Shown: one piece after another, positions 41,213 to 62,855 of the stretch
Numbering within the stretch: position 1 is the first letter of the stretch
Layout of the letters: each line of letters starts with the position of its first letter
Virus record (IMG/VR): IMGVR_UViG_3300037042_002125
Coordinates: 158,079-222,078 of that record
Reading direction: 5' to 3' (one strand)
DNA: 64,000 bases
The notes under the pieces: model-generated
What the model was told of the DNA's origin: nothing
Seen by the model: the letters and a program-made list of their open reading frames with translations, nothing else
Databases searched by the model: none
Position numbers and translations under genes: made by a program

Positions 41213-41220
41213 TATTTACA
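41213..41220 (-). promoter_or_regulatory. TGTAAATA motif
   Basis: Overlaps the DUF2264 stop, upstream of the dehydrogenase and recA. Confidence 0.5.
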
Positions 41221-42367
41221 AAATGATGCCTTCACCATACGATGAATCAATAGATACACTTTCACCTGACCATACTTTAGCTTGCGTCCACTTTTGATCT
41301 TCTGAGGACCAAAAGGGATGATCGTCCGATACAGCTAAAGGTAAAAGAAAGAAGCCAGTTGCGTATAGACTAGACGTGCTAACATAAGGTTCAGATAAAC
41401 AGAATGTCTCATACTTTGAATTAAACCCGTTTCTAAGCATCCCATTAGTCTCGAACATATTCTGTTCGAGCCTCTTTAATACTGCAGTCATACCACATCG
41501 GGACTTCCCCAAAAATCCTGACTCATTTATATCTTGGACTTTACTACACCAACGAGATAGGTGGTGAAATGCTCCTAATCTATAAGTAGCAGACCTACCA
41601 ATAACGGGATAAGTACCTTCGGGAGATATAAGGCGCTCTAAGATACGAGAGTACCGTTCTGACCTAAACGGTTGGTTTACTAACAACGCCTGCATTCTAG
41701 GGTCATCGGCGGTAACTTCTTTGATCGTATCTAAAGCAGGGTGGGTTACGATGCTATTGTAGTAATCAGTATGCAAATCAGGACCGTCCCCGTAAATCGA
41801 CCCACCTTTATAAGATGCTAACGTATTAAGGACAGCAAAATCCAGCCTCATAGGATCAAATGCACTTGACGCAAGTTTGTAAGAAAGAACCTCTGGCATT
41901 GCTGCCAGTAACAGCCAATTGTTCGTTAAAGGCCTAATTTTCTTTAGGTACTGGTTGTACACGACAAAGTTTTCAACAGCTATTGTAGTTGAGTATTCGA
42001 GCAGTGACTTGTAACCATAAGACATCGTATCTAAAATGGACCAAGTGAGGTATCCGTAGTCTACTATGTTCTGAGAGCACGGTTTACAGGAAATGTTGTT
42101 TTTACCAGAAAACAAGTTGTTAAACGCCTTAACTGATAGGTCAGCTAAGTCTCTCCTGTCTATCTCAACACTTGACATAGACTCTGGCGCAAATAACCAA
42201 CACCCTAGACTGTAAAGAATTCTAGAGTAAGCCTCTAGGTTTTGACACAGTTGACCGCCGTTAAAGTTACCAGTCCAAGGTATGTGTTTGTCGTCTGCTA
42301 ACAGGCTTAGGCAAGGTTTAGCGTATTTAACAGCAAAAGCTTCCCAGTAATTTCTGTCTCTAGACAT
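41216..42367 (-). CDS. DUF2264-family protein
   Basis: LEAYSR, NNWLL, Y.DG..DYYNS, LERLISPEGTYPVIGRSATYR, E.YVSTSSLY, PFWS. Confidence 0.8.
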   Translation of the reverse strand: MSRDRNYWEAFAVKYAKPCLSLLADDKHIPWTGNFNGGQLCQNLEAYSRILYSLGCWLFAPESMSSVEIDRRDLADLSVKAFNNLFSGKNNISCKPCSQNIVDYGYLTWSILDTMSYGYKSLLEYSTTIAVENFVVYNQYLKKIRPLTNNWLLLAAMPEVLSYKLASSAFDPMRLDFAVLNTLASYKGGSIYGDGPDLHTDYYNSIVTHPALDTIKEVTADDPRMQALLVNQPFRSERYSRILERLISPEGTYPVIGRSATYRLGAFHHLSRWCSKVQDINESGFLGKSRCGMTAVLKRLEQNMFETNGMLRNGFNSKYETFCLSEPYVSTSSLYATGFFLLPLAVSDDHPFWSSEDQKWTQAKVWSGESVSIDSSYGEGIIL

Positions 42368-43191: not shown

Positions 43192-44628
43192 TTAGTCGTC
43201 TTCATCCTCGTCGTCTTCATCATCCTCGTCATCATCGTCTGACTTCTTGGACTTTTTGCCTTTATTGGCCTGCTTCTTGGCTTTCTTGGCCGGCTTACCT
43301 TTGGCCTTTTTCTTTGGGACGTCGTCTAGATCATCGTCATCATCATCCTCGTCGTCATCATCTTCGTCCTCATCATCATCGTCATCTTTTTTAGATGGCT
43401 TCTTAGAAGGTTTACCCTTAGCTTTAGACGCTTTGGACTTTGGAACGTCCTCGTCTTCGTCATCATCGTCTTCATCATCCTCATCCTCATCGTCATCATC
43501 GTCGTCGGACTTCTTGGATTTCTTTGAGGGTTTGGCCTTGGCCTTCTTGCTCTTGGGTGTATCATCTTCGTCGTCCTCGTCATCTTCGTCCTCGTCATCA
43601 TCTTCGTCATCTTCATCATCGTCATCGTCGGACTTCTTGGATTTCTTCGAGGGCTTAGCCTTTGATTTCTTTGACTTTGGAGTATCCTCGTCTTCATCGT
43701 CTAGGTCATCATCTTCATCGAGGTCGTCTTCTTCGTCCTCATCGTCGTCTTTGGAATGCTTTTTGCCTTTAGCATTTTTATCTGGCTTGCCTTTACCCTT
43801 CTTTGACTTAGGTGTATCTTCATCATCATCATCGTCGTCATCATCCTCGTCGTCACCCTTCTTTTTCTTCTTACCACCGATAGTTGCCATACGCTCAGAC
43901 CAACGCTCAACTTCCTTCTTGGCTTCCTTAGGTGTTTCTGGGGACATCAGTGCAGACAAATCCCACAGCAAGTATTCCTGCTCTTCTTCTGTCAAGGGGC
44001 TATGGTCACCCTTTTGGATAGAGTATGCGTTAGCCGCCAGCTTCGCATCTGGGTCGTACATGATCGAGACATCGCAACCGTACTTGGGATTCGACAGGTC
44101 AAAGCCTTTCTTCTCGCCAGTCTTTTTGTCCTTGTGACGATTAAGAGCGCCAATTTTCTTCAACTCACGAATGAGTGTACTTGTCAGGCGTACGCCACGA
44201 GCAGGCGTCCAGGTCTTGCTACCTTTCGTCTTAATACCAGTCTTGTCTTCGGACTTGCTTGGGGTGCCTTTTTTGCTAGGCTCGTCTTCTTGCACAGACC
44301 TGATGATTGCATTGGTGAAGTATTCCTTCGAGAACCGAATACGCTCATCATCAGCCTCACAGTATGCACATGACTTGGTACTGTCATGATCTTCTGTTTG
44401 GGGATCGAACGACACACATGTCTTAGGAAATTTGATAGTCTTTCCCTCTTTGGATCTTGACTCAATCCAATGCTTCCCATAAGCAAAGATTGGGCCTACG
44501 AAACGTAGCTGCACCCATTCATTAGGCGGGAACTTGAACATGTCCACTATTTCGTCAGGGCGTGGATCCCTGTTGTTTGTGTCTTTGACGTCGCTAAACG
44601 TCTTGTTGGATTTGAAAACTGCTTTCAC
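43192..44628 (-). CDS. gp32-like single-stranded DNA-binding protein with very long Asp/Lys block tail
   Basis: LRFV, HW, KTC...CAYC, NAIIR, G.DV.I, YSI, LWDL pattern, then about 230 aa of D/E and K blocks; GTG start with GGAG RBS. Confidence 0.75.
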   Translation of the reverse strand: MKAVFKSNKTFSDVKDTNNRDPRPDEIVDMFKFPPNEWVQLRFVGPIFAYGKHWIESRSKEGKTIKFPKTCVSFDPQTEDHDSTKSCAYCEADDERIRFSKEYFTNAIIRSVQEDEPSKKGTPSKSEDKTGIKTKGSKTWTPARGVRLTSTLIRELKKIGALNRHKDKKTGEKKGFDLSNPKYGCDVSIMYDPDAKLAANAYSIQKGDHSPLTEEEQEYLLWDLSALMSPETPKEAKKEVERWSERMATIGGKKKKKGDDEDDDDDDDDEDTPKSKKGKGKPDKNAKGKKHSKDDDEDEEDDLDEDDDLDDEDEDTPKSKKSKAKPSKKSKKSDDDDDEDDEDDDEDEDDEDDEDDTPKSKKAKAKPSKKSKKSDDDDDDEDEDDEDDDDEDEDVPKSKASKAKGKPSKKPSKKDDDDDEDEDDDDEDDDDDDLDDVPKKKAKGKPAKKAKKQANKGKKSKKSDDDDEDDEDDEDEDD

Positions 44629-49432: not shown

Positions 49433-49654
49433 TTACAACGTAGATGATTGTTTACCCCAGGTGATTTTGTTCCACACACGCTCATGACACCAGTAGATGA
49501 AAGGCTTAACGACAATCTCAGTGGTGCCAATAGCAAGAGAAACAATAATCTTCCCAGTTACAACGTAGGAGATGATTACGGTTGTAGCTGTCCCACACAT
49601 GCGATAGCTATACGCCTTAACCAAACTCCTAATGCCAGATTCACCGTTACGCAA
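49433..49654 (-). CDS. DUF2061-family small membrane protein (start uncertain)
   Basis: RSLVKAYSYR..T....Y..TG....AIG..E...K..IYW.HERVW. Confidence 0.8.
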   Translation of the reverse strand: MRNGESGIRSLVKAYSYRMCGTATTVIISYVVTGKIIVSLAIGTTEIVVKPFIYWCHERVWNKITWGKQSSTL

Positions 49655-50498
49655 GTCCCATGTCTTGACGAATCTTTGTAGCAGAGATTGAGTGTGTTGC
49701 GTCATCGAAAGTTTCCTGGGCAATTGTATAACCAACACCGCGTCCGTACCCAATGTGGGTGATGTTCGGCACAACTTGAATCTCGTACTGACCTTGGTAG
49801 ATAGGGTCAAGGTCACGTCGTATGAAGGCCTTAACTTTCTCAATCTCGAATGGATTGGAACCATTCCAGCCTTGGCAATCACGCACTTGGATCACAACTT
49901 GACCCGTCTTCTGGATCAGACGGTCAAACAATGCACGGTGGCCTTCGTGCCAAGGTTGCCAGCGGCCAAGCATCTGCACAGTTTCCTTCTGCCAGTTGAA
50001 GACAGGACGACGGCGGTTGTTCAGTATATGGTCGCCAATGAACTCCGCCCACTTGTCAGCGTTCTGTTCAGGGACTCGGAAGTCGTATTGCTCAGGTGGC
50101 ACAAACGCTTTGTTGGTGTCCTCATACCGGCCTTGGTCGATTGTATCAACCCAGATCGTCCAGTCGGCTTTGAAGTTGTGGCGCATTTCAGGCAGAGGGG
50201 CTACAAAGTCAGCAATAGCAAAATCACCTGCTGACTTTAGGGCAAACTCCGCCATACGCAGTGATTGACGGATGCGCCCGTCATGCGAGAAGTCCCAATC
50301 ATTGAACCGCTTGCGAATCTCGTCGGCGTTGAACCAATCAACCTTTACACAGTACGGGCCAAGCATCGAGTCAGTTGTCATCGCTCTGGACAGCGACATG
50401 TTGTTGGCAGTGCCGTTGTCCTCAATGTATTTCTTAAGTGCCATTGCAAGTGTTGTCTTGCCGGAGCCTGGAAGCCCCATTACGAGTATTTTTGTCAT
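49647..50498 (-). CDS. adenylylsulfate kinase fused to HxGH nucleotidyltransferase
   Basis: GLPGSGKT, NADEIR, DFSHDGRIRQ, DFVAP, FVPP; then GRWQPWHEGH, NPF, SISATKIR. Confidence 0.85.
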   Translation of the reverse strand: MTKILVMGLPGSGKTTLAMALKKYIEDNGTANNMSLSRAMTTDSMLGPYCVKVDWFNADEIRKRFNDWDFSHDGRIRQSLRMAEFALKSAGDFAIADFVAPLPEMRHNFKADWTIWVDTIDQGRYEDTNKAFVPPEQYDFRVPEQNADKWAEFIGDHILNNRRRPVFNWQKETVQMLGRWQPWHEGHRALFDRLIQKTGQVVIQVRDCQGWNGSNPFEIEKVKAFIRRDLDPIYQGQYEIQVVPNITHIGYGRGVGYTIAQETFDDATHSISATKIRQDMGLA

Positions 50499-50516
50499 GT
50501 TGTTACCTTGTTAGTG

Positions 50517-51014
50517 TTAGAAACCAATGTTCTGGTTAATTTTTTTAGCGAATGCCCAATCGTAATGTAGCTCATACTGTAAAGGCTTTTCACGATTTGC
50601 CAAACGCCTAGCTAATTCTTGGGCATGGTACTCTGGGAATACGTTGTCCCATTTGGAAGTTATTCGGATATCAAACTTTGACGGAGGCACAAACAATTTG
50701 TTAGTATCCTCGAACCGACCAGCTTCAATACGGTCAACCCAAATTGTGAATTGGGCATTGAACAATGCTCGCGTTTCCTCGGTAGGACACACAAAGTCGG
50801 CAATGACGTTTGCGCCCCACTTGGCTGCAATGTCACACAGGTGTCCCATGCGTCGCGCTTGCTCAACACGATCAGAAGATGAAAAACCAAGGTCCTTGTT
50901 AATGTTTTTGCGTATATCGTCGGCGTTGAAGTGTACGCACTTTAGATTTTTAGCCAAGGCCTCAGCAAGATAAGTCTTGCCGGACCCTGGTAGTCCCATA
51001 ATTAGGATCTTCAT
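50517..51014 (-). CDS. cysC: adenylylsulfate (APS) kinase
   Basis: GLPGSGKT, NADDIRK..DLGFS..DRVEQARR, DFVCP, FVPP. Confidence 0.85.
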   Translation of the reverse strand: MKILIMGLPGSGKTYLAEALAKNLKCVHFNADDIRKNINKDLGFSSSDRVEQARRMGHLCDIAAKWGANVIADFVCPTEETRALFNAQFTIWVDRIEAGRFEDTNKLFVPPSKFDIRITSKWDNVFPEYHAQELARRLANREKPLQYELHYDWAFAKKINQNIGF

Positions 51015-51033
51015 ATTGTTGAACTAGTTGGAG

Positions 51034-51345
51034 TTACTCGGCTTCGAGCATTTCCTTGACGCGGGCGCGCAACGTGTCGTCAGTCCACGTGCCGCGCACG
51101 GCCAAGTACGCATCGCCTTCCCATGCGGTCATGTTGCGAGTAGTCAGTGGTGTAGTCGGGAACGAAACGACGACCTGAACGCTGCTCAGAGGACCGCGCC
51201 CAAAGTTCTCGCGATGCGGCTGATCTGGATTGGGGTTGGGAGGCGTGTAGCCGTAGTTTTCTTGAACGTCAACGAGATCAAATTCAGTGACGACGACGGC
51301 TGCAATTGCTGCGGCCACTACATAGCTTTTCGACAAGGCTGTCAT
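51034..51345 (-). CDS. hypothetical protein
   Basis: AAGGA RBS; Pro/Tyr-rich loop and C-terminal WEGDAY..GTWTD. Confidence 0.65.
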   Translation of the reverse strand: MTALSKSYVVAAAIAAVVVTEFDLVDVQENYGYTPPNPNPDQPHRENFGRGPLSSVQVVVSFPTTPLTTRNMTAWEGDAYLAVRGTWTDDTLRARVKEMLEAE

Positions 51346-51354
51346 GGTAAGTCC

Positions 51355-52272
51355 TTAAAGTTGAATGGCCGATTTTGGCCGTTGGGGTTGCGGGATAGAT
51401 TGCGGAGATTGTTTAACAAGTTGTGATTGGGTTGTTGGCTGGACATTGGGTACCCAGTTAAGTTGTGATTTGATTTGATCGAAATTACTCCTCCAAAAAG
51501 ATGCGGATTCATATTGCTGCCAAAGGTCTCCAGGCAGAATACTAACACGTTGCTTGAATTCAACCTTCTTACGAACCGTATGGAGACCTACAATTTTTGT
51601 CTGCTGATCAAACTCATCGTAAGAATCTTCCACGCTATTTAAGTCATGGTTGAACCAAGGCTCGCCTATGAAATTATAAATAGCTTTGAGCACACTTAGG
51701 GGTTCGCATACTAACGTATCGTACTCAATGTACAGAATGTTCTTACGCTCATTGCAGAACAAAGATTGCTTTACGTTAGCCAAAGGACCCGCAACATAAC
51801 CTGGGAAGTTAGGAATCTGTCCCATAAGCATATTGCTACGCTCGTACACGGTACTTAGTTGCTGATGACCGTACAGTGGCTTGATCGTGTATGGATTTTT
51901 AGCATTTAGTTGCTCGAATGAATCGAGAATCCAAGGTATTTCTCGGACGCACACAATCATCTTGAACGTAGGGAACAGATCAGCAAGCAAGGCCGTCTCT
52001 GCGGACCACCCTCGGTTGGTATTGAAACAAACGTCAGTCTTGTTTTCCTTGTAGTAACTATCAAACAGATCACGAATCATCTGCCTGCGTTTATCAATAG
52101 ATACTACAGCCTCCATCCCTGCTGCTGTACCTGTATCCTTGATGATGCTGTTGATGTACATAGCCAGCGGATCACTGATGCCAGTGGAGAACCTTGGGTT
52201 CTGCTTCAAGATCGCGCTGAGCAACGTAGTACCCGATCGAGGCAAGCCAGAAATAAAGTGATATGTCTTCAT
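51355..52272 (-). CDS. PAPS-dependent sulfotransferase, RaxST-like
   Basis: YHFISGLPRSGTTLL..IL.QNP, NTNRGW, IVCVR..WILDSFE, YDTL, GLH.VR, FW. Confidence 0.9.
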   Translation of the reverse strand: MKTYHFISGLPRSGTTLLSAILKQNPRFSTGISDPLAMYINSIIKDTGTAAGMEAVVSIDKRRQMIRDLFDSYYKENKTDVCFNTNRGWSAETALLADLFPTFKMIVCVREIPWILDSFEQLNAKNPYTIKPLYGHQQLSTVYERSNMLMGQIPNFPGYVAGPLANVKQSLFCNERKNILYIEYDTLVCEPLSVLKAIYNFIGEPWFNHDLNSVEDSYDEFDQQTKIVGLHTVRKKVEFKQRVSILPGDLWQQYESASFWRSNFDQIKSQLNWVPNVQPTTQSQLVKQSPQSIPQPQRPKSAIQL

Positions 52273-52358
52273 TTGAAAACTCCAGTGACTACGCCGATAA
52301 TGTAGCCAAGAATGAACGCTACCATCGGGTGCTGTATGACGGCGTGAAGTTTAGCCAT
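52269..52358 (-). CDS. 29-aa membrane peptide (not in ORF track)
   Basis: MAKLHAVIQHPMVAFILGYIIGVVTGVFK; overlaps both neighbours. Confidence 0.5.
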   Translation of the reverse strand: MAKLHAVIQHPMVAFILGYIIGVVTGVFK

Positions 52359-54063
52359 TAGACTTCACCTTAGTGATAAGCTTGCCAAGGTCAGGCATGT
52401 ATAGGTACTGTATCTCGCTATTGAACAGAGTGACCAGCGCATCATACGTGCTCTCGACCAGCGGTTGGCCGGCCAGATTGAAGCTGGTGTTGAACAGCAT
52501 AGGCATTCCGGTAATTGACTCAAAAGCTTTGATGAGTTTGTAGTACACAGGGTTCTGTTTTTCAGTAACAGTCTGGATGCGGCAGGTACCGTCAACGTGT
52601 GTCACTGCGGGAATAAGATCGGCCTTGTCTTCACGCACCTTCACAGCGTACATCATGAACGGAGACTCTTCGAGGCCGGCCATTTCAAACAGTTGGTCTG
52701 CGTACTCTGCCATAACCGAGCCTGCAAAGGGGCGGAACCACTCGCGGTGCTTGACCGAGTTGATAAACTCTTTACCATTAGGCGCGCGCGGATCAAACAA
52801 GATACTGCGATTGCCCAAAGCGCGTGGACCGCCTTCTGCTTGCCCTTGGAACAAGGCGACGATCTGTTGTTTGGACAATAGGTCTGCTACATCTTCTGCA
52901 GTTGCATCTTCTACCTTGATGTTGCCGTTCTTCTCAGCCACCTGAATGGCCTCGTAGTTAGGAGGGGCGCCAAGATACACTGACGTTAGAGGGCGCACCG
53001 TCAGTTCCTTGCTGTGCTGATACCACGCGTATTGTGCCAGGCCGATCGCCGTGCCGCCGTCATGCGCCATTGGATCAACGTAGAACTCAATGTTAGGGAA
53101 CGCCTTGACGTACTTGTAGTTGGCGACGCAGTTGAGCGCGAACCCACCAGATAGTACGATGTTGGTTTCACCAGTTGTGTCAATCGCCTTCTGGATCAAC
53201 CGCATCACCATTTCTTCGGCTTCATTTTGAACCGCGTAAGCAAGGTTCTTGTCTTGCTCACGAACCAGATTGAAATCGTTGTGCCACTCACGAGGCTCAG
53301 TGTAGCGTTTCAGATATGGGAACCTGTTCTCGTCGATGTGTGCGCCCGCTGGGTACGCAGGGATCAGCAGGTTTTTGTTTCCCTTGCCGTTGACGAAGAA
53401 GGGTGGGATGCTCGTGTCTGGTTTTCCGTACGGGGACAAGCCCATTGTCTTACCAGCTTCAATGAAGCCGAATCCCAGGTACTGGGAGACAGCTTCGTAT
53501 GCCTTGGTAATGGTGACAGAGCTATCAAACTCTTGGATGCCGTTGTCGTAGTAGGTGTTGGTGCCACCGTCGGAGTAGCGTTTGTAGACTGCATTGAACT
53601 CATGTGGGTAACTGCATTGGTAAATTGTCTCGGTCTCGTATCCGGCAACCTCTGGGCCGTTCTCGCTAACACGTTCACGGTGGACCGAACCAGAACCGTC
53701 AACGATGATTGCGGCGGCGGTCTCAAAGCCTGAACCGTAAAAGGCAGCCGCAGCGTGGCCAAGATGGTGTAAGTTCCCCATCACAGATACCTTGATATTC
53801 GGGTTAAATTTACGGGCCAATGCAGAGTACGCATTTTCCCCTGTCCACGGTAAAACAGCTAATTCCGGTGAGGTACCGCCTATAATTAGCTCGTCTACGG
53901 GGTGATTTATGAGGACCTGTAGCATAGCACGAAACGGGTTTCCGTCGTATTTCATGCGACTGACTCGTTCTTCTTCACCATAGAAGGCAAGAACACCGTC
54001 TACGACGAGGGCGGCGCTGCCGTTGTGGCCTGGATTGATTGCCAAAATTGAATACATGGTCAT
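52351..54063 (-). CDS. O-carbamoyltransferase (NodU/CmcH/TobZ family)
   Basis: GHNGSAA, EEERVSRMKYD, HHLGHA, VDGSG, GKTMGL, GGFALNC, DGGTAIG, GPRALGNRS, REWFRPFA, NTSFN. Confidence 0.95.
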   Translation of the reverse strand: MTMYSILAINPGHNGSAALVVDGVLAFYGEEERVSRMKYDGNPFRAMLQVLINHPVDELIIGGTSPELAVLPWTGENAYSALARKFNPNIKVSVMGNLHHLGHAAAAFYGSGFETAAAIIVDGSGSVHRERVSENGPEVAGYETETIYQCSYPHEFNAVYKRYSDGGTNTYYDNGIQEFDSSVTITKAYEAVSQYLGFGFIEAGKTMGLSPYGKPDTSIPPFFVNGKGNKNLLIPAYPAGAHIDENRFPYLKRYTEPREWHNDFNLVREQDKNLAYAVQNEAEEMVMRLIQKAIDTTGETNIVLSGGFALNCVANYKYVKAFPNIEFYVDPMAHDGGTAIGLAQYAWYQHSKELTVRPLTSVYLGAPPNYEAIQVAEKNGNIKVEDATAEDVADLLSKQQIVALFQGQAEGGPRALGNRSILFDPRAPNGKEFINSVKHREWFRPFAGSVMAEYADQLFEMAGLEESPFMMYAVKVREDKADLIPAVTHVDGTCRIQTVTEKQNPVYYKLIKAFESITGMPMLFNTSFNLAGQPLVESTYDALVTLFNSEIQYLYMPDLGKLITKVKSNG

Positions 54064-54989
54064 TTCACTTTCTTGTCGACGTCAGCACAGATGGATACGA
54101 AGATTTCGTTGAGGTCCTTCTCGGAGAACCGCATGGTTGACTCATTGAGCCTGTTGGACAACGCTACGTCAAGACCGGCCAGACGGATAGGGCTGTACTT
54201 CTTGACGGTCAGACGATCAATGATATTGAAGTAGTCCGGGTACGACGTATTGATCGGGAACGTAGAGCCAAAGATCACAGAGCCGGGTGTACCGACCGCA
54301 CGAGCAATGTGCTGGCCTACGCTGTCGCAACCAACGAAGTAGTCGGCTTCGGCAATCAACGCACCCCACTGGCGCAGATCGCAAGTGTACTTGGCGGCAA
54401 AGTTGTCGTCCTTGAGTTGGAAGTCAGGCTCGCCGAAGAACACCATGTTGTATCTTTGGGCTAATTTCTTCACCAGCGACAGGTAATCCTTTTGGCTCAA
54501 GCTGCGGGATTCTTCATCGATGATCGCAGTCTTGTCAATCTTGGCGCCTCGACCAAACGGTTGGAAGATCACGGTCCGTTGCTTCTTCTGGATGCCCTTG
54601 AGGTCGTTGAGTGTGCTGGTAGCCACAGCGCGTTCGGTGATGTTGAACACCATCTGCGGTACGCCCAGATCGCTGTGATCCTTGGTCAGATTGATTTCCC
54701 GGTCAAAGCCTTCGACCAGCGAAATCTCCTGACGGAAATATGCGGGGTTGCGATACGGCTCAGGTGTGATGATACGATCCGCGTTCTTCACCACGTTGTC
54801 AAACACGCCCTTGGTGTCCAGGTTATACGCACGATCCTGTAGCTCAGGAATGCCCCAGAACAGAAAGTCCCATGCACCAATGAGCACAGCCCAATCATCA
54901 TTAGGGTTGAGCCGTCCGTACTTGATGAGTGCGGGGATGGCCGCGATCACTCGGCCTGCGCCGCCGTCGATGAAAAATATAGTCTTCAC
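54060..54989 (-). CDS. GT-B glycosyltransferase, GT9 (heptosyltransferase)-like
   Basis: GGAGRVIAAIPAL, FQPFG, ADYFVGCDSVGQHIARAVGTP..IFGST. Confidence 0.75.
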   Translation of the reverse strand: MKTIFFIDGGAGRVIAAIPALIKYGRLNPNDDWAVLIGAWDFLFWGIPELQDRAYNLDTKGVFDNVVKNADRIITPEPYRNPAYFRQEISLVEGFDREINLTKDHSDLGVPQMVFNITERAVATSTLNDLKGIQKKQRTVIFQPFGRGAKIDKTAIIDEESRSLSQKDYLSLVKKLAQRYNMVFFGEPDFQLKDDNFAAKYTCDLRQWGALIAEADYFVGCDSVGQHIARAVGTPGSVIFGSTFPINTSYPDYFNIIDRLTVKKYSPIRLAGLDVALSNRLNESTMRFSEKDLNEIFVSICADVDKKVK

Positions 54990-55705
54990 AGTAGGAGTCT
55001 TTCTTCAGTGGTTGTTGCTATTTCGGAAGTAGTAGGCGCTAAGCCTGTTAGCGAAATGTTCAAGTGTCGCTCGAACAGGATGTCAGTCTGGAGCAACGTG
55101 CCTCGCTCATCGTACGAGGTGCCAAAGATGTCGATTGCTACGTATCCGATTGCCGCCATGTACGCGATGACTTCGGCAAACAGAGGTGCGTCCTTGTTGT
55201 ATTCTGCGATTGAGCACTCCAATAAAATGTACAGAGGCAGCTTATCAAGAATGAATCCGGATGCGCCCTTGAGTATCAGTAGCTCTGCGCCCTGTGCATC
55301 GATTTTGATTAGTCCGTTCGTTGACCACGAGCCGAAGAAGTTGTGCTTGCGGTGCAGGGCGTCCACCGTTGTCATGTGCTTCTTCAGGACTAGCGTAGAC
55401 ATCGGGTTGTAGTGGAACGTCTGCTCAAGGAAGATTGAGCTGCCCGTAGTGTTCTTGTCTTCGCCGAGCGTGTAGAAATTCACGTTGTCTTGCTCACGAT
55501 CACCAAGCAAGGCGATGATCGCTCGGTCAGATAACCACGGCGCCTGGCGTTCGTCAGCTTCGATCTGCCACACTATAGCAGTAGGCCACACGGCTCTGAC
55601 CGTTTCAGTGAACTCACCACGGTAGGCGCCAATGTCAAGCACGTAGTTGATGTGTCTTCCGTGGTTCTTCAACACCGAGAACCTCTGTCTGAATTGTTCA
55701 ATCAT
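54986..55705 (-). CDS. FkbM-family methyltransferase
   Basis: LDIGAYRG, IEA, TGSS, IKIDAQGAELLILKG, Q.DILF. Confidence 0.9.
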   Translation of the reverse strand: MIEQFRQRFSVLKNHGRHINYVLDIGAYRGEFTETVRAVWPTAIVWQIEADERQAPWLSDRAIIALLGDREQDNVNFYTLGEDKNTTGSSIFLEQTFHYNPMSTLVLKKHMTTVDALHRKHNFFGSWSTNGLIKIDAQGAELLILKGASGFILDKLPLYILLECSIAEYNKDAPLFAEVIAYMAAIGYVAIDIFGTSYDERGTLLQTDILFERHLNISLTGLAPTTSEIATTTEERLLL

Positions 55706-56502
55706 TTTCTGTTCCAAAAGTCGAGCTGCATATCAGTGTAGAGATTGGTCAGTTCGTGTCCGATCACTTTCTCGGGCTCAGGACTTGTCTGAGCCATCGT
55801 CGGGCGCACGTCATGCAGACCTTCGAGACCGCCGTGGTATGAGTCGTTCTCAGGCATTGGCTGTAGCGAATCCAGACGGACTCCGCAGGACTCAATGCCG
55901 ACGAACTGACAGACCTGGTCCATTGTTCCCTGACTGTTATTTACAATGTCCAAATAGCGTAGCACCAGCAGGTCAGCAGCACCTGATTGAAATCCATGAC
56001 GCAGCGCCATGTAGGGCACGTTGATGTAACGCTCCCACAAAATCTTGCATCTGTTCTTGTCGTTGATCGGCAGCCCCTTGTCGATCAGGTCTTGATCCAC
56101 GAACGTAGTCTTGTGAGAGTTCTTGCGTATCAGCAGAATGTAGGACGCCAGCACACTGGGTATGGATCGCACTGTGCAGATGATCTTGGGACGCTCGTGC
56201 AGAACGTCCTTCATCATGTGAGCCTGACGCGGCCAGATGCGGTTCTTGTCAACGATGATAGGCTTGGATACGTGCTCGTAAGCGCCGAACACCAAGCCTC
56301 GCATCATGTTGCTGTACTGGTTTGGGTCTGGATTGACTAACGCTGCCGAGATTTGGGGCCAGTTGTTGTTGAAGATCGTAATCATGTCCACCACTGGTGA
56401 CGTAGTGGAGGCATGAATCATCGGATGTTGATTCAGCAAGGACGCAAGTACCTGTGAGCCAGAGCGTGGAATGCCCGAGAGCATGATAAAAGACTTGTCC
56501 AT
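55702..56502 (-). CDS. second PAPS-dependent sulfotransferase, RaxST-like
   Basis: SGIPRSGSQVL..LLNQHP, DKNRIW, ICTVR..LAS, GLHDVR, DFW. Confidence 0.88.
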   Translation of the reverse strand: MDKSFIMLSGIPRSGSQVLASLLNQHPMIHASTTSPVVDMITIFNNNWPQISAALVNPDPNQYSNMMRGLVFGAYEHVSKPIIVDKNRIWPRQAHMMKDVLHERPKIICTVRSIPSVLASYILLIRKNSHKTTFVDQDLIDKGLPINDKNRCKILWERYINVPYMALRHGFQSGAADLLVLRYLDIVNNSQGTMDQVCQFVGIESCGVRLDSLQPMPENDSYHGGLEGLHDVRPTMAQTSPEPEKVIGHELTNLYTDMQLDFWNRK

Positions 56503-56987
56503 TACAGTTGTTTCCCGTTCGTTGGGGCCGCAGTTGCTGTAGTACCGCGCATAATCTCAAGGAACTCCTTTGTGCCTAGGAAGTTCCAGCCACCATCAAT
56601 CTCGTACCGCACATTGGCCAAGGCATTTCGTTGGATAGCTTGCACGGCCCAATTCAGTACACGAGCGTCAAGCCGTTGCCCCATTTCCTTTATGGTGACG
56701 AACGATACTCCAGTTCGGGTTGTTTCCAACACTAGCAACGCGTTGACCAGATTAGGCTTCATCCATGCAGGGATAGCGAGCGACCTCAACCATAGACAGC
56801 GGAACGTTTTGCACGGTTGCTCAGGTCGATCTTCATAGATGGTGCAGCCAGTTTCACACACGAAATGGCACTTCGTACCTGGATAGAACTGGTGTCCGTG
56901 CGCTTCGCCGGTCGCCCAACCATCGCAGCAGGCCGTACAGCCACCACAGTTCCTTTCAGCCATTATGTGAATTGTGGCACCTCTCAT
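56502..56987 (-). CDS. Cys-cluster protein (YkgJ/CxxCxxCC-like, Zn or Fe-S binding)
   Basis: CGGCTACC...CHFVC..GCTIYEDRP..CKTFRCLW. Confidence 0.75.
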   Translation of the reverse strand: MRGATIHIMAERNCGGCTACCDGWATGEAHGHQFYPGTKCHFVCETGCTIYEDRPEQPCKTFRCLWLRSLAIPAWMKPNLVNALLVLETTRTGVSFVTIKEMGQRLDARVLNWAVQAIQRNALANVRYEIDGGWNFLGTKEFLEIMRGTTATAAPTNGKQL

Positions 56988-57682
56988 AGCTGCCTCTTCG
57001 TAGTCGGTATGGTAAAGTCAGGACCCTTGAACCATCTGGTAAACTGATGACTAGTTCCTTTAAACTTGTAGGGTCCGATATGGTTGCACACGATGTCAGG
57101 ATCGAGATATATCTGGAAGCCGCCCGTACGTAGCTTGTTGAACGCGTGAATGTCCTCGCTTATGAGGCTACTGTCTTCGATCACAACGTCAAAGATCATG
57201 CGACGCTCTTTGTTGTCCTTGGGATCGATGTAGGGCACACTTGCGTCCCACAAATACTGCATGGCCTTGCGACTCATCTTGACGAAGCCTGTTCCTAGCC
57301 CATCAACTTCGATCAGACCAGTGACGGGGTCCTTGGGACGTCGCTGTACACTGCGAACAACGTACTCCTCAATGTCGCCCTTCTTGCGATACGTGCCACC
57401 AACCACGTCAGCCTCGTGGTCTAGCAGTCGGAAGAACCACTCAGGTTCCCACTCAATGTCGCTGTCAATCCAGATCAGATCGTCAACGCCCGACTCAAGA
57501 GCAACGTGGATTGTGTCGTTACGGGCACGTTGCAGCAGAGCGTCGAAGCTGATCCACATTGGCGTAATATCGACGTCACGTTCCATGCCCATCTTGATCG
57601 TATTGCACAGACTGTTCGTGTACCACACGTCGAGGCGGCCGTCGTAGCACGGCGTTCCTATCATCACTTTTCGTGCGCTCAT
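56984..57682 (-). CDS. GT-A fold glycosyltransferase
   Basis: IGTPCYDG, RARN, WIDSD, GGTY, GTGF, SED, H.G; ATGA-coupled start at 57682. Confidence 0.8.
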   Translation of the reverse strand: MSARKVMIGTPCYDGRLDVWYTNSLCNTIKMGMERDVDITPMWISFDALLQRARNDTIHVALESGVDDLIWIDSDIEWEPEWFFRLLDHEADVVGGTYRKKGDIEEYVVRSVQRRPKDPVTGLIEVDGLGTGFVKMSRKAMQYLWDASVPYIDPKDNKERRMIFDVVIEDSSLISEDIHAFNKLRTGGFQIYLDPDIVCNHIGPYKFKGTSHQFTRWFKGPDFTIPTTKRQL

Positions 57683-58323
57683 TGCAGTGCCTTTATCAAG
57701 TCTCGAAATTCTAGGAGGACAGTCTGTGCATCGGGCCCGAGATAGTTGTTCATGAACGAACGATATGGTACGGTGTCCGTCCACTCGTACACAATCTCCT
57801 CGTACTCGCGGTCGTGAAAAATGCTGTTGCCAACCAGGTGTTCTAGCATACTCAGTTTAGGCACCACAAGCATATTGCCGTCACGCTCAGTGAATATCCA
57901 GCGATGGTGAATGAAACCCAACCACTTGGCGCTCTCGATCCGCGTAAGTTCTGTGCGGATGCTGGGCGTGGTAATGACGCCGGCCTTGGCAATACGCGGC
58001 AGTAGCTCCAACGTAGTGAACGGGTTGTAGAGGTCTTCGAGAGTGTGAGTGCAGATCGCGTAGTCGAAGCGTCCGTGACGTTCCACATACTCAAGCATGG
58101 TGTTCCACGCCTCACGGTCGCAGACATCAATTCTCACGCCACTAGGTGACGTCACTGCATTGATGTCAATCACGAGGTCAGTGATAGACGCAGACCAGCC
58201 TCCGCCATGAGTACCGCCGACGTCAATGACAGAGTATCCCGGCGTCTGTTGTTTGGTGTTCCCTACGTCGTGTAGGATACGCGCACGGGTATGCAGCGTC
58301 CTACCGTATTTGATTGTGAGCAT
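57679..58323 (-). CDS. SAM-methyltransferase-like protein
   Basis: VIDVGG, FDYAICTHTLEDL.NP, HHRW. Confidence 0.7.
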   Translation of the reverse strand: MLTIKYGRTLHTRARILHDVGNTKQQTPGYSVIDVGGTHGGGWSASITDLVIDINAVTSPSGVRIDVCDREAWNTMLEYVERHGRFDYAICTHTLEDLYNPFTTLELLPRIAKAGVITTPSIRTELTRIESAKWLGFIHHRWIFTERDGNMLVVPKLSMLEHLVGNSIFHDREYEEIVYEWTDTVPYRSFMNNYLGPDAQTVLLEFRDLIKALQ

Positions 58324-58325
58324 AT

Positions 58326-59270
58326 TCAAGCCTGCAGTAGTGAGTTGAAGAACTGACGCCACTCGCCAATGCGATGTTCCCAACTGTAGCGACTGTTGAA
58401 CCAGGCCGACTGTGCACGCCATTGTGAGTCGGGTAGCCACGTGTACTCGTCGATAGCGTCTGCAAGCACCTTGGCGTACCGCTCGACTAGTCCGCTGCGC
58501 TCACTATTGACATACGTGGCGTGAGGTCCGCACGTCTCAGGCAACGCACCAAGACCTGTAGTGACTATGTGGCAACCAGCAGCGCCAGCCTCAATCGCGG
58601 ACAAGCAGCTAGTCTCCTCGAACGTACTTGGGTACGCCAGAATGTGAGCCCGTTGCACCGCTACGCGAACGGCTTTGTTGGTGACGTATCCTCTGTAATT
58701 TACACCTGGAGCAGTCCGACATTTGGCAAGGACGTCCTTGTTTTTCTGACCTTCGCCACTAGCGTAACCCGCACCATAGATGATGTTGGATGAGTACACG
58801 TCAAGAACCACATTGCGGCCAGGCTTCACAATCTCGTATGCGTCAAGCAGAATGTCAAGACCCCGATCTGGCATGGAGGTATAGATGAGCCGAATCTGAC
58901 CGTCCGGCTTTGGCACGAACGGTATTGGGTCAATTGCGTTTCTGATTACGGTGTTTTGAACGTGCTCGATGTTGTACAGTTCACGGAATTGGGCAAGCTG
59001 CCATTCACTGACGTAAACAAAGGACGATACTTGGCTGACGAACTCAGCGTCGCGCATTCCATAGGTTGCGGGCTGGTCAGTCATCAAGTGCTGCCACACT
59101 ACGTTGAGCCTTTGGGACTCAAGTAGCTGTGGAGCGCAGATGCTAAGGATCAAGTTGACCCGGCTTAGAATAGCGGGCCAATTTGGTCCTAGGTACCGCA
59201 AGAGGGAGGTGTACAGAAGTTCTGATCCGCCTTTTGGCGTTATTGATATTGGTGTCATGGTCTGTACCAT
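58326..59270 (-). CDS. GT4-family glycosyltransferase (start uncertain: 59270 or 59258)
   Basis: GGSE, VSEWQ, IRNAI, YTSMPDRGL, YPSTFEETSCLSAIEA.AAG, GALPE. Confidence 0.9.
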   Translation of the reverse strand: MVQTMTPISITPKGGSELLYTSLLRYLGPNWPAILSRVNLILSICAPQLLESQRLNVVWQHLMTDQPATYGMRDAEFVSQVSSFVYVSEWQLAQFRELYNIEHVQNTVIRNAIDPIPFVPKPDGQIRLIYTSMPDRGLDILLDAYEIVKPGRNVVLDVYSSNIIYGAGYASGEGQKNKDVLAKCRTAPGVNYRGYVTNKAVRVAVQRAHILAYPSTFEETSCLSAIEAGAAGCHIVTTGLGALPETCGPHATYVNSERSGLVERYAKVLADAIDEYTWLPDSQWRAQSAWFNSRYSWEHRIGEWRQFFNSLLQA

Positions 59271-59282
59271 TGGTGGAGAACG

Positions 59283-59307
59283 AAAAAGGAGTGTACGCAC
59301 ACTCCTT
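59283..59307 (-). terminator. intrinsic terminator after the fibre gene
   Basis: AAGGAGTGT/ACACTCCTT stem plus T tract on the - strand. Confidence 0.7.
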
Positions 59308-59314
59308 ATTTACA
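59307..59314 (-). promoter_or_regulatory. TGTAAATA motif heading the modification island
   Basis: Abuts the terminator stem. Confidence 0.55.
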
Positions 59315-59333
59315 GTGCTTGATCTGCGGACGG

Positions 59334-62300
59334 TCACGCTCCTTCTAGCACACGCACGCGTTCTGTGAGCGCCTCTACGCTGGTAGTCAAAGCGTCATTC
59401 TTTTCTGCCAGTTCCTGAATGGCTTTCACCATCACTGGCAAGAGCTTACCAGGTGCTGCTTCGTATCTTGATTCGTCCTCGTTGGAGATCACAAGTTCAA
59501 GCCAGTCACGGACCTGATGGTAATCCATCGCTTGCTTGAGTTCCTGGGCAATAAATCCAGCGTACCCCTGACCAACTTTTGATCCGTCACGCATATTCCA
59601 TGTGAATTTCACTGGACGGATTTGCCGAATGAAATCAAGACCTAGTGGAATGTCCTGAATGTCTTTCTTGTCACGGGCATCAGATAGTGCAGTGATACTG
59701 GTTACCTGAGCACGGATGGTTGCTATGCTTGCGTTACCAAGAGTAATAGTATTAGAGCAAGCCGCTGCTAATGCCTGTGAGTTAAATCCTATTAGGATAT
59801 TATTTGATCCCCCGTTAACGGTGTATCCGGAACAGCAACCAATAGCTATGTTATTGCTGCCGGTGGTGTTGCCGTAGAGCGCCAAGTACCCTTGGGCGGT
59901 GTTATTACTGCCGGTGGTGTTGGAGTAGAGCGCCTGTTGTCCCTGGGCGAAGTTATTACTGCCGGTGGTATTGTAGAAGAGCGCCTGTTGTCCCTGGGCG
60001 AAGTTATTATTGCCAGTAGTGTTGAATATGAGCGCCAAGTACCCCGAGGCGATGTTATTACTGCCGGTGTTGGAGTAGAGCGCCTGTTGTCCCTGGGCGA
60101 AGTTATTATTGCCGGTGGTGTTGGAGGTGAGCGCCAAGTACCCTTGGGCGAAGTTATTACAACCGGTGGTATTGGAGCTGAGCGCCAAGTACCCTTGGGC
60201 GAAGTTATTGTTGCCGGTGGTGTTGAAGTAGAGCGCCTGGTATCCTATTGCGGTGTTATTACTGCCGGTGGTGTTGCCGTAGAGCGCATGGTTTCCTTGG
60301 GCGAAGTTATTACTGCCGTAGGTGTTGCTGTAAAGTGCAGCTTGTCCCTGGGCGGTGTTATTACTGCCGGTGGTGTTGGAGGTGAGCGCCTGGTATCCTA
60401 TTGCGGTGTTATTACTGCCGGTGGTGTTGGAGTAGAGCGCCTGTTGTCCCTGGGCGAAGTTATTATTGCCGGTGGTGTTGTTGCTATAGAGTGCCTTGTA
60501 TCCCTGGGCGAAGTTATTACAACCGGTGGTGTTACCGTAGAGCGCCCAGTACCCTTGGGCGAAGTTATTACGGCCGGTGGTGTTGGAGGTGAGCGCCAAG
60601 TACCCTTGGGCGAAGTTATTACCGCCGGTGGTGTTGCAGTAGAGCGCCTGTTGTCCCTGGGCGAAGTTATTATTGCCGGTGGTGTTGCTGCTATAGAGTG
60701 CCTTGTATCCCTGGGCGAAGTTATTACTGCCGGTGGTGTTGCCGTAGAGCGCCAAGTATCCTATGGCGGTGTTATTATTACCGTAGGTATTTGAGTAGAG
60801 CGCCGAGTATCCTATGGCGGTGTTATTACGGCCGGTGGTGTTGCAGTAGAGCGCCCTGCATCCTTGGGCGGTGTTATCATTACCAGTAGTATTGCCGTAG
60901 AGCGCCCTGTATCCTATGGCGGTGTTATTACAACCGGTGGTATTGGAGCGGAGCGCCTGTGGTCCCTGGGCGAAGTTATTACTGCCGGTGGTGTTGCTGT
61001 AAAGTGCCCCGCATCCTTGGGCGGTGTTATGGCTGCCGGTGGTGTTACCGTAGAGTGCCTTGTATCCTTGGGCGAAGTTATTACTGCCGGTGGTGTTCTT
61101 GCGGAGCGCCAGTGGTCCTATGGCGGTGTTATTATTACCGGTGGTGTTGCATTGGAGCGCCTTGCATCCTTGGGCGGTGTTACTACAACCGGTGGTATTG
61201 TAGAAGAGCGCCTGGTATCCTTGGGCGAAGTTATTACAACCGGTGGTGTTACCGTAGAGCGCCTGATATCCTTGGGCGAAGTTATTGTTGCCGTAGGTGT
61301 TGAAGTAGAGCGCCTTACTTCCCTGGGCGGTGTTATTACAACCGGTGGTATTGGAGCGGAGCGCCGAGTATCCTTGGGCGAAGTTAGTACTGCCGGTGGT
61401 GTTGGAGCGGAGCGCCGAGTATCCTTGGGCGAAGTTATTACAGCCAGAGGTGTTGCCGTAGAGCGCCCTGCATCCTATGGCGGTGTTATGGTTGCCGGTG
61501 GTGCTGTAAAGTGCCCCGTATCCTTGGGCGAAGTTACCACAGCCGGTGGTGTTCTTACATAGAGCACCGATACCAACTGCAAAGTTATTAGCGCCCGTAG
61601 TATTACTAGCCAATGCGCCAGTCCCGATACCAAGGTTGTTGTAAGTCGGGGTTAGTGAGGCGCCGCCTACCGAAGCGCCATTGACTGTTAATGCTCCGGC
61701 ACCAGTTACCTGTAGGCAGTTAGTACCTGCTTTAAGGTAGATAGTGTTAACCAGACCGGCAGTCCCTACATAAGAGCCTATGATAGTGTTGTCAACACCT
61801 GTGGTTATGCTCTTACCAGCATCAGCACCAATAGCGATGTTGTTACCTGCATTGTTCGATGCGTATAGGGCACAGCAACCGATACCAATGTTGTTGGAAC
61901 CAGTAGTATTGCTGTATAGTGCCTTGTATCCTTGGGCGGTGTTATTATTACCGGTGGTGTTGCATTGGAGCGCCTTGCATCCTTGGGCGGTGTTATTACT
62001 GCCGGTGGTGTTGGAGAGGAGCGCCAAGTATCCTATTGCGGTGTTATTACAACCGGTGGTGTTACCGTAGAGCGCCCTGTATCCTTGGGCGAAGTTATTA
62101 CAGCCAGTAGTGTTGAATAAGAGCGCCTTGCATCCTATGGCGGTGTTATTACTGCCGGTGGTGTTACCGTAGAGCGCCTTGCATCCTTGGGCGGTGTTAT
62201 TATTGCCGGTGGTGTTCTTGTAGAGCGCCTTACTTCCCTGGGCGGTGTTATTATTGCCGGTGGTGTTGCCGTAGAGCGCCTTGCATCCTTGGGCGGTGTT

Positions 62301-62720: not shown

Positions 62721-62756
62721 CGTTCCTTTCAAGAACTCGGTTATTTAGATTGTCGA

Positions 62757-62765
62757 ATGAAATTA
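62757..62765 (-). promoter_or_regulatory. TAATTTHAT motif
   Basis: TAATTTCAT before the fibre gene. Confidence 0.5.
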
Positions 62766-62855
62766 GATTGAATTAGTTTTGAAATTTTAGTTCAAGTCTC
62801 TTCCAATATTCTTACTCTATCTGAAAGCACCCTGAGATTTAGTAATAAAGAGTTC

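Follow-up and report, generated by a model that had tools for sequence, protein, structure and literature searches.

A freshwater jumbo phage encodes an APS kinase fused to a 118-residue nucleotidyltransferase which, based on comparative genomics and in the absence of biochemistry, is probably a previously unrecognised and very small ATP sulfurylase. The same pair of genes is found in about four in five sampled SAR11 genomes and in SAR86 genomes, and of 13 carrier genomes 11 lack both Sat and CysD. The locus lies in a 64,000-nucleotide stretch (hereafter the window) of the 222-kb IMG/VR virus record IMGVR_UViG_3300037042_002125 (positions 158,079 to 222,078). Our analysis confirms both open reading frames and supports the original prediction, made from the sequence alone, of a minimal bifunctional PAPS synthase with a tandem kinase paralogue, although with three corrections. 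First, the C-terminal domain (hereafter the mini-NT) is not a shrunken Sat, since its detectable kin are NadM/archaeal NMN adenylyltransferases, and if it is a sulfurylase it represents a separate recruitment within the HxGH superfamily. Second, the module is not a curiosity of this phage. Third, the absence of CysD/CysN and Sat from one window, to which the original prediction pointed, means little on its own, and the argument that carries weight is their absence from whole carrier genomes that do have sulfotransferases. We found no published description of this family. The features of the locus are collected in the table below.

Features of the phage locus (window coordinates unless stated; aa, residue numbers in the fusion protein)
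Position	Strand	Feature	Supporting data
49647-50498	-	Fusion gene, 283 aa: APS-kinase-family domain plus mini-NT; candidate minimal PAPS synthase	PF01583 and NMNAT-like hits; phrog_10255
50004-50498	-	Kinase domain, aa 1-165; a 26-aa insert (aa 27-52) is specific to this phage clade	Foldseek; alignment with a canonical CysC domain
50454-50477	-	P-loop, GLPGSGKT, aa 8-15
50313-50330	-	NADEIR, aa 57-62
50196-50210	-	DFVAP, aa 97-101
50109-50132	-	GRYEDTNK
49650-50003	-	Mini-NT domain, aa 166-283; proposed sulfate adenylyltransferase	Profile match to archaeal NMNAT 1f9a; AlphaFold2 pLDDT 94
49938-49967	-	GRWQPWHEGH, aa 178-187
49845-49856	-	NPFE
49728-49748	-	YGRGVGY, aa 251-257
49668-49691	-	SISATKIR, aa 270-277
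50517-51014	-	Stand-alone kinase paralogue, 165 aa, 18 nt from the fusion; probably an APS kinase	PF01583 56.9 bits; best PDB sequence matches are CysC/PAPSS kinase domains, E 1e-9
51034-51345	-	103-aa ORF of unknown function between the sulfotransferase and the kinases	GC 0.57; no PHROG hit
51355-52272	-	Sulfotransferase 1, 305 aa, a likely consumer of PAPS	PF13469 E 6e-14; PF00685 E 1.3e-7
52351-54063	-	Carbamoyltransferase (NodU/CmcH type), part of the same-strand modification cluster	PF16861 E 4.6e-61; PF02543
54060-54989	-	GT9-family glycosyltransferase	PF01075 E 2.3e-6
54986-55717	-	FkbM-family methyltransferase	PF05050 E 1.1e-10
55702-56502	-	Sulfotransferase 2, 266 aa	PF13469 E 1.1e-11; PF00685 E 5e-9
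58326-59300	-	GT1-type glycosyltransferase at the upstream end of the cluster	PF13692/PF00534
59334-62732		Tail-fibre gene	PF13884
G000 10202-11056 (outside the window)		Second copy of the fusion, 78% identical

The assignment of these genes is more than chance. The APS kinase model PF01583 was above its gathering cut-off (21.1 bits) for both the fusion (31.6 bits, E 2e-7) and the paralogue (E 3.3e-15), phrog_10255 covers both domains of the fusion at E 3.6e-44, at least 8000 clusters at 90% identity are homologous, and the AlphaFold2 model of the fusion has a pLDDT of 92.4 and a pTM of 0.83. A DNA search of the locus against cultured phages gave no match, and among sequencing runs the locus was found only in DNA runs from lake water and sediment, with no RNA run. 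A word-based protein search with the C-domain alone returned only fragments or short gene calls of the same family, and was repeated with a 12-sequence alignment. The original prediction missed the second copy of the fusion, so that the genome holds three kinase domains and two mini-NT domains. The statement that the window has no Sat holds over the whole phage record, where PF01747 has no match. CysD-like sequence is limited to one weak PF01507 hit (22.5 bits) in a 195-aa PP-loop ORF 100 kb away, CysN not having been included in the search.

The kinase belongs to the APS kinase family. The best-ranked Foldseek matches of the fused kinase domain are APS kinases (probability 1.00), and K14, D59, R62, F70, R75, R81, F98, P101 and R106, which include P-loop, catalytic Asp and substrate-motif positions, are invariant between the phage-type kinases and a canonical CysC domain, while the first Asp of the DGD motif is Asn. 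Importantly, this is a divergent subfamily and not an equivalog, as the scores against TIGR00455 were 22.8 bits for the fusion and 53.9 bits for the paralogue (cut-off of 138.7 bits), and the lid segment (DPKGLYKKARAG...FTGI, including KGLYKKAR) is replaced by the shorter GR(F/Y)xDTNKxFxxP. The paralogue is 46% identical to the fused kinase domain and lacks its insert. Its role remains unexplained, as the original prediction had noted, although it probably adds APS-kinase capacity.

The mini-NT carries GRxQPxHxGH and SxTxIR motifs, and G13, R14, Q16, H19, H22, G87, R88, G91 and R112 of the domain are invariant in 47 sequences. By descent it is a trimmed NadM/archaeal-NMNAT-like domain, with a profile match of E 5e-12 to the archaeal enzyme MJ0541 (1f9a) and fold Z scores of 10-10.5 to this group. 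However, it reached only 24.4 bits against TIGR01527 (equivalog cut-off of 181 bits). About 25 residues of the middle of the fold (MJ0541 76-108; profile positions 80-89 span MJ0541 residues 75-109) are replaced by the invariant YGR(D/G)VGY loop, and the domain ends six residues after the ISxTxxR motif, where the NMNAT chains run on (the model aligns to chain residues 1-136 of the 164-residue chain 1f9a_A and to 1-148 of NadM). These observations bear on the possibility of a permuted NadR-like NAD salvage enzyme (a ribosylnicotinamide kinase plus an NMN adenylyltransferase, used by phages to restore NAD+), which NadR, having the same two domain types, would suggest. We consider this very doubtful. 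The deleted segment may carry the nicotinamide contacts, the kinase is of APS-kinase and not RNK type, and the domain order is the reverse of NadR. TIGR01526 does not hit the phage fusion at E<=0.01 and gives only 18.7 bits (cut-off 341) on the SAR11 kinase. Nothing NAD-related turned up in the neighbourhoods read or among the ten commonest viral neighbour families scanned. In addition, NadD is present in all 3 SAR11 genomes tested, but it was not found above its cut-off in the two SAR86 genomes, so that an NMNAT role is not excluded there.

Fold comparison does not separate NMNAT, PPAT and Sat (Z 10.5 to Francisella NadM 2qjt, 10.4 to PPAT and 9.0, with 113 residues aligned, to the T. thermophilus ATP sulfurylase 1v47). 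As PPAT is a joint top fold match (and Foldseek rank 1), and as dephospho-CoA kinase, like APS kinase, phosphorylates the 3'-OH of an adenylyl compound, a CoA-synthase-like pair resembling COASY could be envisaged. This is highly unlikely, since canonical CoaD (176-190 bits) is present in all five carrier genomes tested, CoaE is found in all five (above its cut-off in four), there is no CoA-related context, and the kinase is of APS-kinase type. In contrast to the fold, sequence shows no detectable similarity to Sat, with a profile comparison against a real Sat giving a probability of 1.6%. Analogous motifs occur in the same order, namely HxxH, GRD and ISGTxxR in a real Sat and HxGH, YGR(D/G) and ISATxIR here, although this does not establish that the two GR loops occupy equivalent positions.

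In one protein (P0384) the mini-NT is fused to a canonical CysC (PF01583 212 bits, full length), and another (P0297) has the order NT then phage-type kinase. In SAR116 the mini-NT heads a cluster of aprM-like, aprB (190 bits), aprA (951 bits), a metallophosphatase, a 116-aa ORF and cysC. This was seen on 5 long metagenome contigs besides the SAR116 genome contig, and the identical protein is listed in 1670 blocks of the collection. This cluster is, however, one lineage, as AprA/AprB were found next to the mini-NT in 1 of 80 bacterial loci and in no viral locus. In 70 of 80 bacterial loci the kinase and the mini-NT are adjacent genes. A complex prediction for the separately encoded SAR11 kinase and mini-NT gave no verdict (score 0.00), which is not evidence either way.

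The mini-NT is carried by 99 of 121 sampled Pelagibacterales genomes. All 13 of 13 carrier genomes have PF13469 or PF00685 sulfotransferases, whereas only 1 has Sat and only 1 has CysD; in 14 control genomes sulfotransferases were detected in only 2. Among 40 SAR11 genomes, CysD occurs in 0 of 20 carriers and 5 of 20 non-carriers, the partner kinase occurs in 19 of 20 carriers and 0 of 20 non-carriers, and the pair and CysD/CysNC were never found together. These statistics are modest (Fisher p about 0.03-0.05) and not corrected for phylogeny or genome incompleteness. Interestingly, non-carriers with sulfotransferases tend to have CysD/CysNC, or a cysC-sat-sulfotransferase cluster. SAR11 has AprA but no Sat in our searches, and cysDNCHIJ and sat have been reported absent from the Pelagibacter genome, yet Table 3 of the same study lists cysC, cysQ and aprA in the genomes (PMC5069961).

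In the phage, copy 1 of the fusion is 0.4-0.9 kb from a sulfotransferase, and copy 2 overlaps a 241-aa ORF whose nearest clusters with a Pfam family, by protein-language-model features, are sulfotransferase families. Sulfotransferase is the second commonest neighbour family in 80 related viral loci (25 loci, median 1.4 kb away), and a search of the N-termini of neighbour families for hidden sulfotransferase motifs found only the family already recognised. Importantly, many phages with the fusion show no recognised sulfotransferase. This is the case for 15 of 25 records over 40 kb (mostly fragments), including one 383-kb record rated complete, and for Sano and DLP_6, which were searched with PF13469 only.

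Based on these results, we consider it probable that the 283-aa protein is a minimal two-domain PAPS synthase. In this model, the mini-NT uses its HxGH and ISxTxxR motifs to bind ATP and transfers AMP to sulfate to give APS and pyrophosphate, with the invariant Arg of the YGR(D/G)VGY loop proposed to hold the small anionic acceptor. The kinase domain then phosphorylates the 3'-OH of APS to give PAPS, which pulls the unfavourable first step forward. The PAPS would feed the phage's own sulfotransferases, which sit in a glycan-modification cluster next to tail-fibre genes. The substrate (sulfate), the direction, the role of the Arg loop and the target of sulfation are inferred. In SAR11, SAR86 and SAR116 the same two activities are encoded by adjacent genes, and there the mini-NT is proposed to be the ATP sulfurylase that annotation has missed, which could also run in reverse (APS + PPi to ATP + sulfate) downstream of AprBA.

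The context evidence points to APS as the shared metabolite and not specifically to sulfate activation. It is therefore possible, although we think it unlikely, that the mini-NT works on APS without being a sulfate-activating enzyme, for example as an APS:phosphate adenylyltransferase or ADP-sulfurylase-like enzyme, or as an APS/PAPS-binding regulatory module, as the kinase-like domain is in fungal ATP sulfurylase. Indeed, in SAR11 AprBA could supply APS from sulfite, so that PAPS synthesis there does not strictly need a sulfurylase. However, the two SAR86 genomes tested have sulfotransferases and the kinase/mini-NT pair but no AprA, Sat or CysD, and the phage record has no Sat and no convincing CysD (AprA was not part of the search of this record); APS there has to come from sulfate. 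Furthermore, the catalytic HxGH, the invariant Arg residues and ISxTxxR are strictly kept, which argues against a purely regulatory domain.

A last alternative is that the pair activates a sugar or another phospho-compound for the neighbouring glycosyltransferases, by analogy with HldE (heptose kinase plus adenylyltransferase feeding GT9 enzymes). A GT9-family gene lies in the cluster, one relative of the kinase (P0380) is fused to a PF00483 sugar-phosphate nucleotidyltransferase, the phiRSL1 kinase lies beside NDP-sugar pyrophosphorylase-like genes, and fold matches include HldC and cytidylyltransferases at Z 7-8.5. This seems improbable given the residues that the kinase shares with canonical APS kinases, the fusion of the mini-NT to a full canonical CysC and its clustering with aprMBA and cysC. 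Moreover, there are no glycosyltransferase genes beside it in the SAR11 locus read or among the commonest neighbour families of the viral loci.

It is more likely than not that the mini-NT is a third, previously unrecognised type of ATP sulfurylase and, at 118-130 residues, the smallest, carried by phages fused to its kinase as the smallest known PAPS synthase. It would then be the sat gene missing from SAR11 and SAR86, completing sulfite oxidation (AprBA, then APS + PPi to ATP + sulfate) and PAPS supply for surface-glycan sulfation in the ocean's most abundant bacteria, and resolving the oddity of SAR11 genomes that have aprBA, cysC, cysQ and sulfotransferases but no sat or cysDN (PMC5069961). 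If so, a known reaction is carried out by a family that annotation pipelines currently name "hypothetical", "NMN adenylyltransferase" or "PPAT". This would change how sulfur-cycle genes are counted in marine and freshwater metagenomes, explain a very common phage auxiliary gene and offer a 283-residue, single-chain PAPS generator of practical use for enzymatic sulfation.

Compared with animal PAPS synthases (PAPSS1/2) and bacterial or fungal Sat-CysC fusions (e.g., Aquifex aeolicus 2gks), the phage protein also joins an APS kinase and an HxxH-type adenylyltransferase in one polypeptide, with the domain order of PAPSS and the same proposed chemistry. Its transferase is 118 residues against about 390 for the Sat module (PUA-like domain plus catalytic domain), and the whole enzyme is 283 aa against about 620. 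Relative to Sat-type ATP sulfurylases, the N-terminal PUA-like domain is absent, the mini-NT following the kinase directly, while the gene neighbours (aprMBA, cysC and sulfotransferases) are of the same kind. CysD/CysN (NodP/NodQ) has the same proposed reaction but an unrelated fold (PP-loop ATPase plus GTPase) and is driven by GTP. It supplies PAPS to Nod-factor-type sulfotransferases, which sit next to carbamoyl- and methyltransferases much like those in this cluster. Finally, COASY and HldE follow the same design principle, a small HxGH adenylyltransferase fused to the kinase of the adjacent pathway step, with different substrates and kinase families.

The 222-kb IMG/VR virus record, of which the window is the last 64 kb, is rated 93% complete, and its DNA polymerase is 37-39% identical to those of the jumbo phages Burkholderia BCSR5, Achromobacter Motura and Ralstonia phiRSL1. 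Near-identical DNA occurs in lake-water and sediment metagenomes from several studies. The original prediction of an APS kinase fused to a small HxGH nucleotidyltransferase (hereafter mini-NT), with a tandem kinase paralogue, is confirmed, since both reading frames are present exactly where they had been placed and the N-terminal regions of both proteins hit APS_kinase PF01583 above the gathering score. The C-terminus of the fusion carries GRWQPWHEGH (aa 178-187) and SISATKIR (aa 270-277). Upstream on the same strand lie, in order, a sulfotransferase, a NodU-type carbamoyltransferase, a GT9 glycosyltransferase, an FkbM methyltransferase, a second sulfotransferase, two ORFs with no family match, a weak methyltransferase-like ORF (17.5 bits, below the cut-off), a GT1 glycosyltransferase and a tail-fibre gene. 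This set, directly beside tail-fibre genes, resembles a Nod-factor-style glycan decoration set. From 49.6 kb to the end of the window most genes have a GC of 0.51-0.53, against 0.46 for the genome, although the stand-alone kinase and the first sulfotransferase are at 0.44-0.45. Interestingly, the phage genome carries a second copy of the fusion, which is 78% identical and has a GC of 0.41 against 0.51 for the first copy. It overlaps the end of a 241-aa ORF that has no Pfam hit but whose nearest clusters carrying a Pfam family, by protein-language-model features, are Stf0, Sulfotransfer_3 and Sulfotransfer_1 families. An NT5C-type nucleotidase and a clamp loader lie upstream, and the same arrangement is conserved on other contigs. 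The only other sulfur-nucleotide-like gene in the phage encodes a PP-loop (SGGxDS-like) protein with a weak PAPS_reduct hit of 22.5 bits, too short and too partial a match to be called CysD.

Coordinates of the features discussed in the text (G000, the phage genome; other G and L labels, genomes and loci examined in this study)
Feature	Position	Strand	Size
Kinase/mini-NT fusion, first copy	window 49647-50498	-	283 aa
Stand-alone kinase	window 50517-51014	-	165 aa
GC-shifted stretch with the sulfotransferase and glycan-modification genes	window 49600-64000		
Second copy of the fusion	genome position 10202-11056		284 aa
241-aa ORF together with the second copy of the fusion (outside the window)	G000:C1:9487-11056 (L004:774-2343)		
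PP-loop protein with weak PAPS_reduct hit	G000:C1:107647-108234 (L006:1072-1659)		195 aa
ssDNA-binding protein (phrog_15004)	window 43192-44628	-	
DUF2264 protein	window 41216-42367	-	
SAR116 cluster of mini-NT, aprM-like, aprB, aprA, metallophosphatase, 116-aa ORF and cysC	L037:10001-13601 and L186-L191		
SAR11 cassette with cysC and sat, without the mini-NT	L185 (G043:C2:154500-162000)		
Ralstonia phage phiRSL1 locus with the phage-type kinase	L002:7989-15223		
Xylella phage Sano locus with the fusion	L001:3202-7729		

The best-ranked fold matches of the fusion are APS kinases, and the best PDB sequence matches of the stand-alone kinase are CysC and PAPSS kinase domains. We aligned the phage kinases with a canonical CysC domain (taken from the relative P0384, described below) and found that the P-loop, the second Asp of the DGD motif, the following Arg, the Phe/Arg/Arg of the LGFSxxDRxENxRR motif and the F-x-x-P of FISP are all invariant, whereas the lid segment is replaced by a shorter GR(F/Y)xDTNK motif. 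This is a divergent APS-kinase subfamily, which scores below the NCBIfam equivalog cut-offs. The stand-alone kinase is 46% identical to the fused kinase domain, lacks its 26-aa insert and keeps all the shared catalytic residues. The most economical reading of this second kinase would be extra APS-kinase capacity that pulls the unfavourable sulfurylase equilibrium, although it could also be possible that it serves as a partner in a mixed dimer.

The mini-NT is predicted to fold with high confidence (pLDDT 94). A 47-sequence profile of the domain matches the archaeal NMN adenylyltransferase MJ0541 at E 5e-12, but the match breaks in the middle: profile positions 9-80 align to MJ0541 residues 3-75, and positions 89-114 to residues 109-133. 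About 25 residues of the NMNAT core are therefore missing, and in their place is a YGR(D/G)VGY loop whose Gly, Arg and Gly are invariant. In addition, the protein ends six residues after the ISxTxxR motif, whereas its NMNAT relatives run on beyond it (the model aligns to residues 1-136 of the 164-residue chain 1f9a_A). The missing helix may carry the nicotinamide contacts in archaeal NMNAT. The deleted segment and the APS-type kinase argue against a role of the pair in NAD synthesis, which is unlikely for SAR11, where NadD is kept, but is not excluded for SAR86, where NadD was not found above the cut-off. Structure comparison does not discriminate between candidate functions, as it gives Z scores of 10.5 for NadM, 10.4 for PPAT, 10.1 for MJ0541, 9.5 for NadR, 9.0 for T. 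thermophilus ATP sulfurylase and about 6 for other sulfurylases. A CoA-synthase-like role is unlikely, because canonical CoaD is present in all five carrier genomes tested and CoaE is found in all five, above its cut-off in four. There is no sequence-level similarity to Sat. A genuine Sat from SAR116 shows the motif order HxxH, GRDHAG, ISGTxxR, and the mini-NT has HxGH, YGR(D/G), ISATxIR in the same order.

The family is very large. We found at least 8000 90%-identity clusters of near-full-length relatives, and a search of 1.8 billion representatives gave 1965 hits at E of 0.001 or better. More than 597 viral contigs carry it, and it corresponds to phrog_10255, which includes Xylella phage Sano and relatives. 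Fusions among the relatives offer a first indication of function: P0384 joins the mini-NT to a full canonical CysC (212 bits) and P0297 has the mini-NT in front of a phage-type kinase, and the two domains are therefore linked in either order and with either kinase type. Other architectures of the phage-type kinase exist. It is fused to a PF00483 sugar-phosphate nucleotidyltransferase in P0380 and occurs with 260-300-residue extensions of unknown family in P0303 and P0309, while in P0267 the whole kinase/mini-NT unit follows a DUF4118 membrane domain. The PF00483 fusion, along with the GT9 gene in the phage cluster, gives some support to a sugar-activating, HldE-like role, but this reading does not explain the CysC fusion or the apr-cysC cluster described below.

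In bacteria, a scan of one genome per prokaryotic species found more than 573 loci at 53-64% identity, in SAR11, SAR86, SAR116, Marinoscillaceae and others. In 70 of the 80 loci kept, a 135-aa phage-type kinase gene and a 124-130-aa mini-NT gene are adjacent, in the same order as in the phage fusion, and 99 of 121 sampled Pelagibacterales genomes carry the mini-NT. Interestingly, in SAR116 a stand-alone mini-NT heads a cluster of aprM-like, aprB, aprA, metallophosphatase, a 116-aa ORF and cysC, in which every recognisable gene acts on APS or PAPS. The cluster was reproduced on five 0.5-0.9-Mb metagenome contigs besides the SAR116 genome contig, and the identical mini-NT protein is listed in 1670 blocks of the public collection. 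This would appear to be the position that sat occupies in classical sat-aprMBA operons.

The phyletic pattern points in the same direction, although these tests are small and are not corrected for shared ancestry or genome incompleteness. All 13 diverse carrier genomes have PAPS-type sulfotransferases, while only one has Sat and only one has CysD, and both are SAR116. SAR11 genomes have AprA but neither Sat nor CysD. Among 20 SAR11 carriers and 20 non-carriers, sulfotransferases occur in 18 versus 11, the partner kinase in 19 versus 0, and CysD in 0 versus 5. The five non-carriers with CysD also have CysNC fusions and sulfotransferases, and one of these non-carriers also has a cysC-sat-(pyruvate-kinase-like)-sulfotransferase cluster. 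In L185, a locus of a SAR11 genome without the mini-NT, the cassette consists of canonical cysC, sat, a pyruvate-kinase-like gene, a sulfotransferase and a 243-aa membrane protein that we read from its sequence as a TauE-like exporter, and the same sat plus pyruvate-kinase-like pairing occurs in SAR116 (locus L099). Smith et al. 2016 (PMC5069961) report that 'Ca. Pelagibacter ubique' lacks cysDNCHIJ and sat, yet their Table 3 lists cysC, cysQ and aprA in most strains. A 2026 preprint places sulfotransferases in the SAR11 hypervariable surface-polysaccharide region. A more serious rival than the NAD, CoA or sugar readings is that the mini-NT acts on APS in some other way, such as APS phosphorolysis or regulation. 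However, the two SAR86 genomes tested have sulfotransferases but no AprA, Sat or CysD, and the phage record, which was not searched for AprA, has no Sat and no convincing CysD. Both therefore need a route from sulfate to APS.

Based on these results, the original interpretation of the fusion as a very small bifunctional PAPS synthase is supported, and we infer, in the absence of enzymology, that the mini-NT is probably a sulfate adenylyltransferase. The reaction and the kinase-transferase architecture are known, but the use of a trimmed NadM-like HxGH domain as the sulfurylase would be a new enzyme type, of which we found no description in the literature searched. Source annotations call these proteins hypothetical, adenylylsulfate kinase, NMN adenylyltransferase or PPAT, and one JGI record is auto-named "ATP sulfurylase". 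The same module would fill a recognised gap in SAR11 and SAR86 sulfur metabolism.

The viral neighbourhoods count in part against this reading. Only 25 of 80 related viral loci, and 10 of 25 viral records over 40 kb, show a recognised sulfotransferase. Those records are mostly fragments, but a 383-kb record rated complete has none. Divergent sulfotransferases, of which the 241-aa ORF may be one, escape Pfam, so these counts are lower bounds. RCC1-repeat proteins are the commonest neighbour family of the fusion (26 of 80 loci), slightly ahead of sulfotransferases, and T4-type neck and tail-sheath-stabiliser genes and PhoH are also frequent neighbours. Sano-like phages of Xylella, Xanthomonas and Stenotrophomonas carry the fusion (31-37% identity). 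Sano and DLP_6 have it without a PF13469 gene, although Sano does encode an annotated cysteine dioxygenase 3 kb upstream, and a MazG gene also lies a few kb upstream. In phiRSL1, the 'APS kinase' (ORF238) has the phage-type kinase domain with an unrelated C-terminus and without the mini-NT; this absence of the mini-NT fits a host that already makes APS. It heads a run of glucosyltransferase-like genes, two nucleotidyltransferases, an annotated galactose-3-O-sulfotransferase and a thymidylate-synthase-family gene, which might be a sulfated glycan or DNA-modification locus.

Elsewhere in the window, a full-length DUF2264 protein (E 2.3e-49), from a family described as bacterial, is encoded in the phage replication region. 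The ssDNA-binding protein (phrog_15004, E 1e-79) has a roughly 230-residue C-terminal tail of alternating poly-Asp/Glu and Lys-Ser-Lys blocks, and the opposite strand reads as a long poly-Ser ORF, which is an artefact of the repeat.
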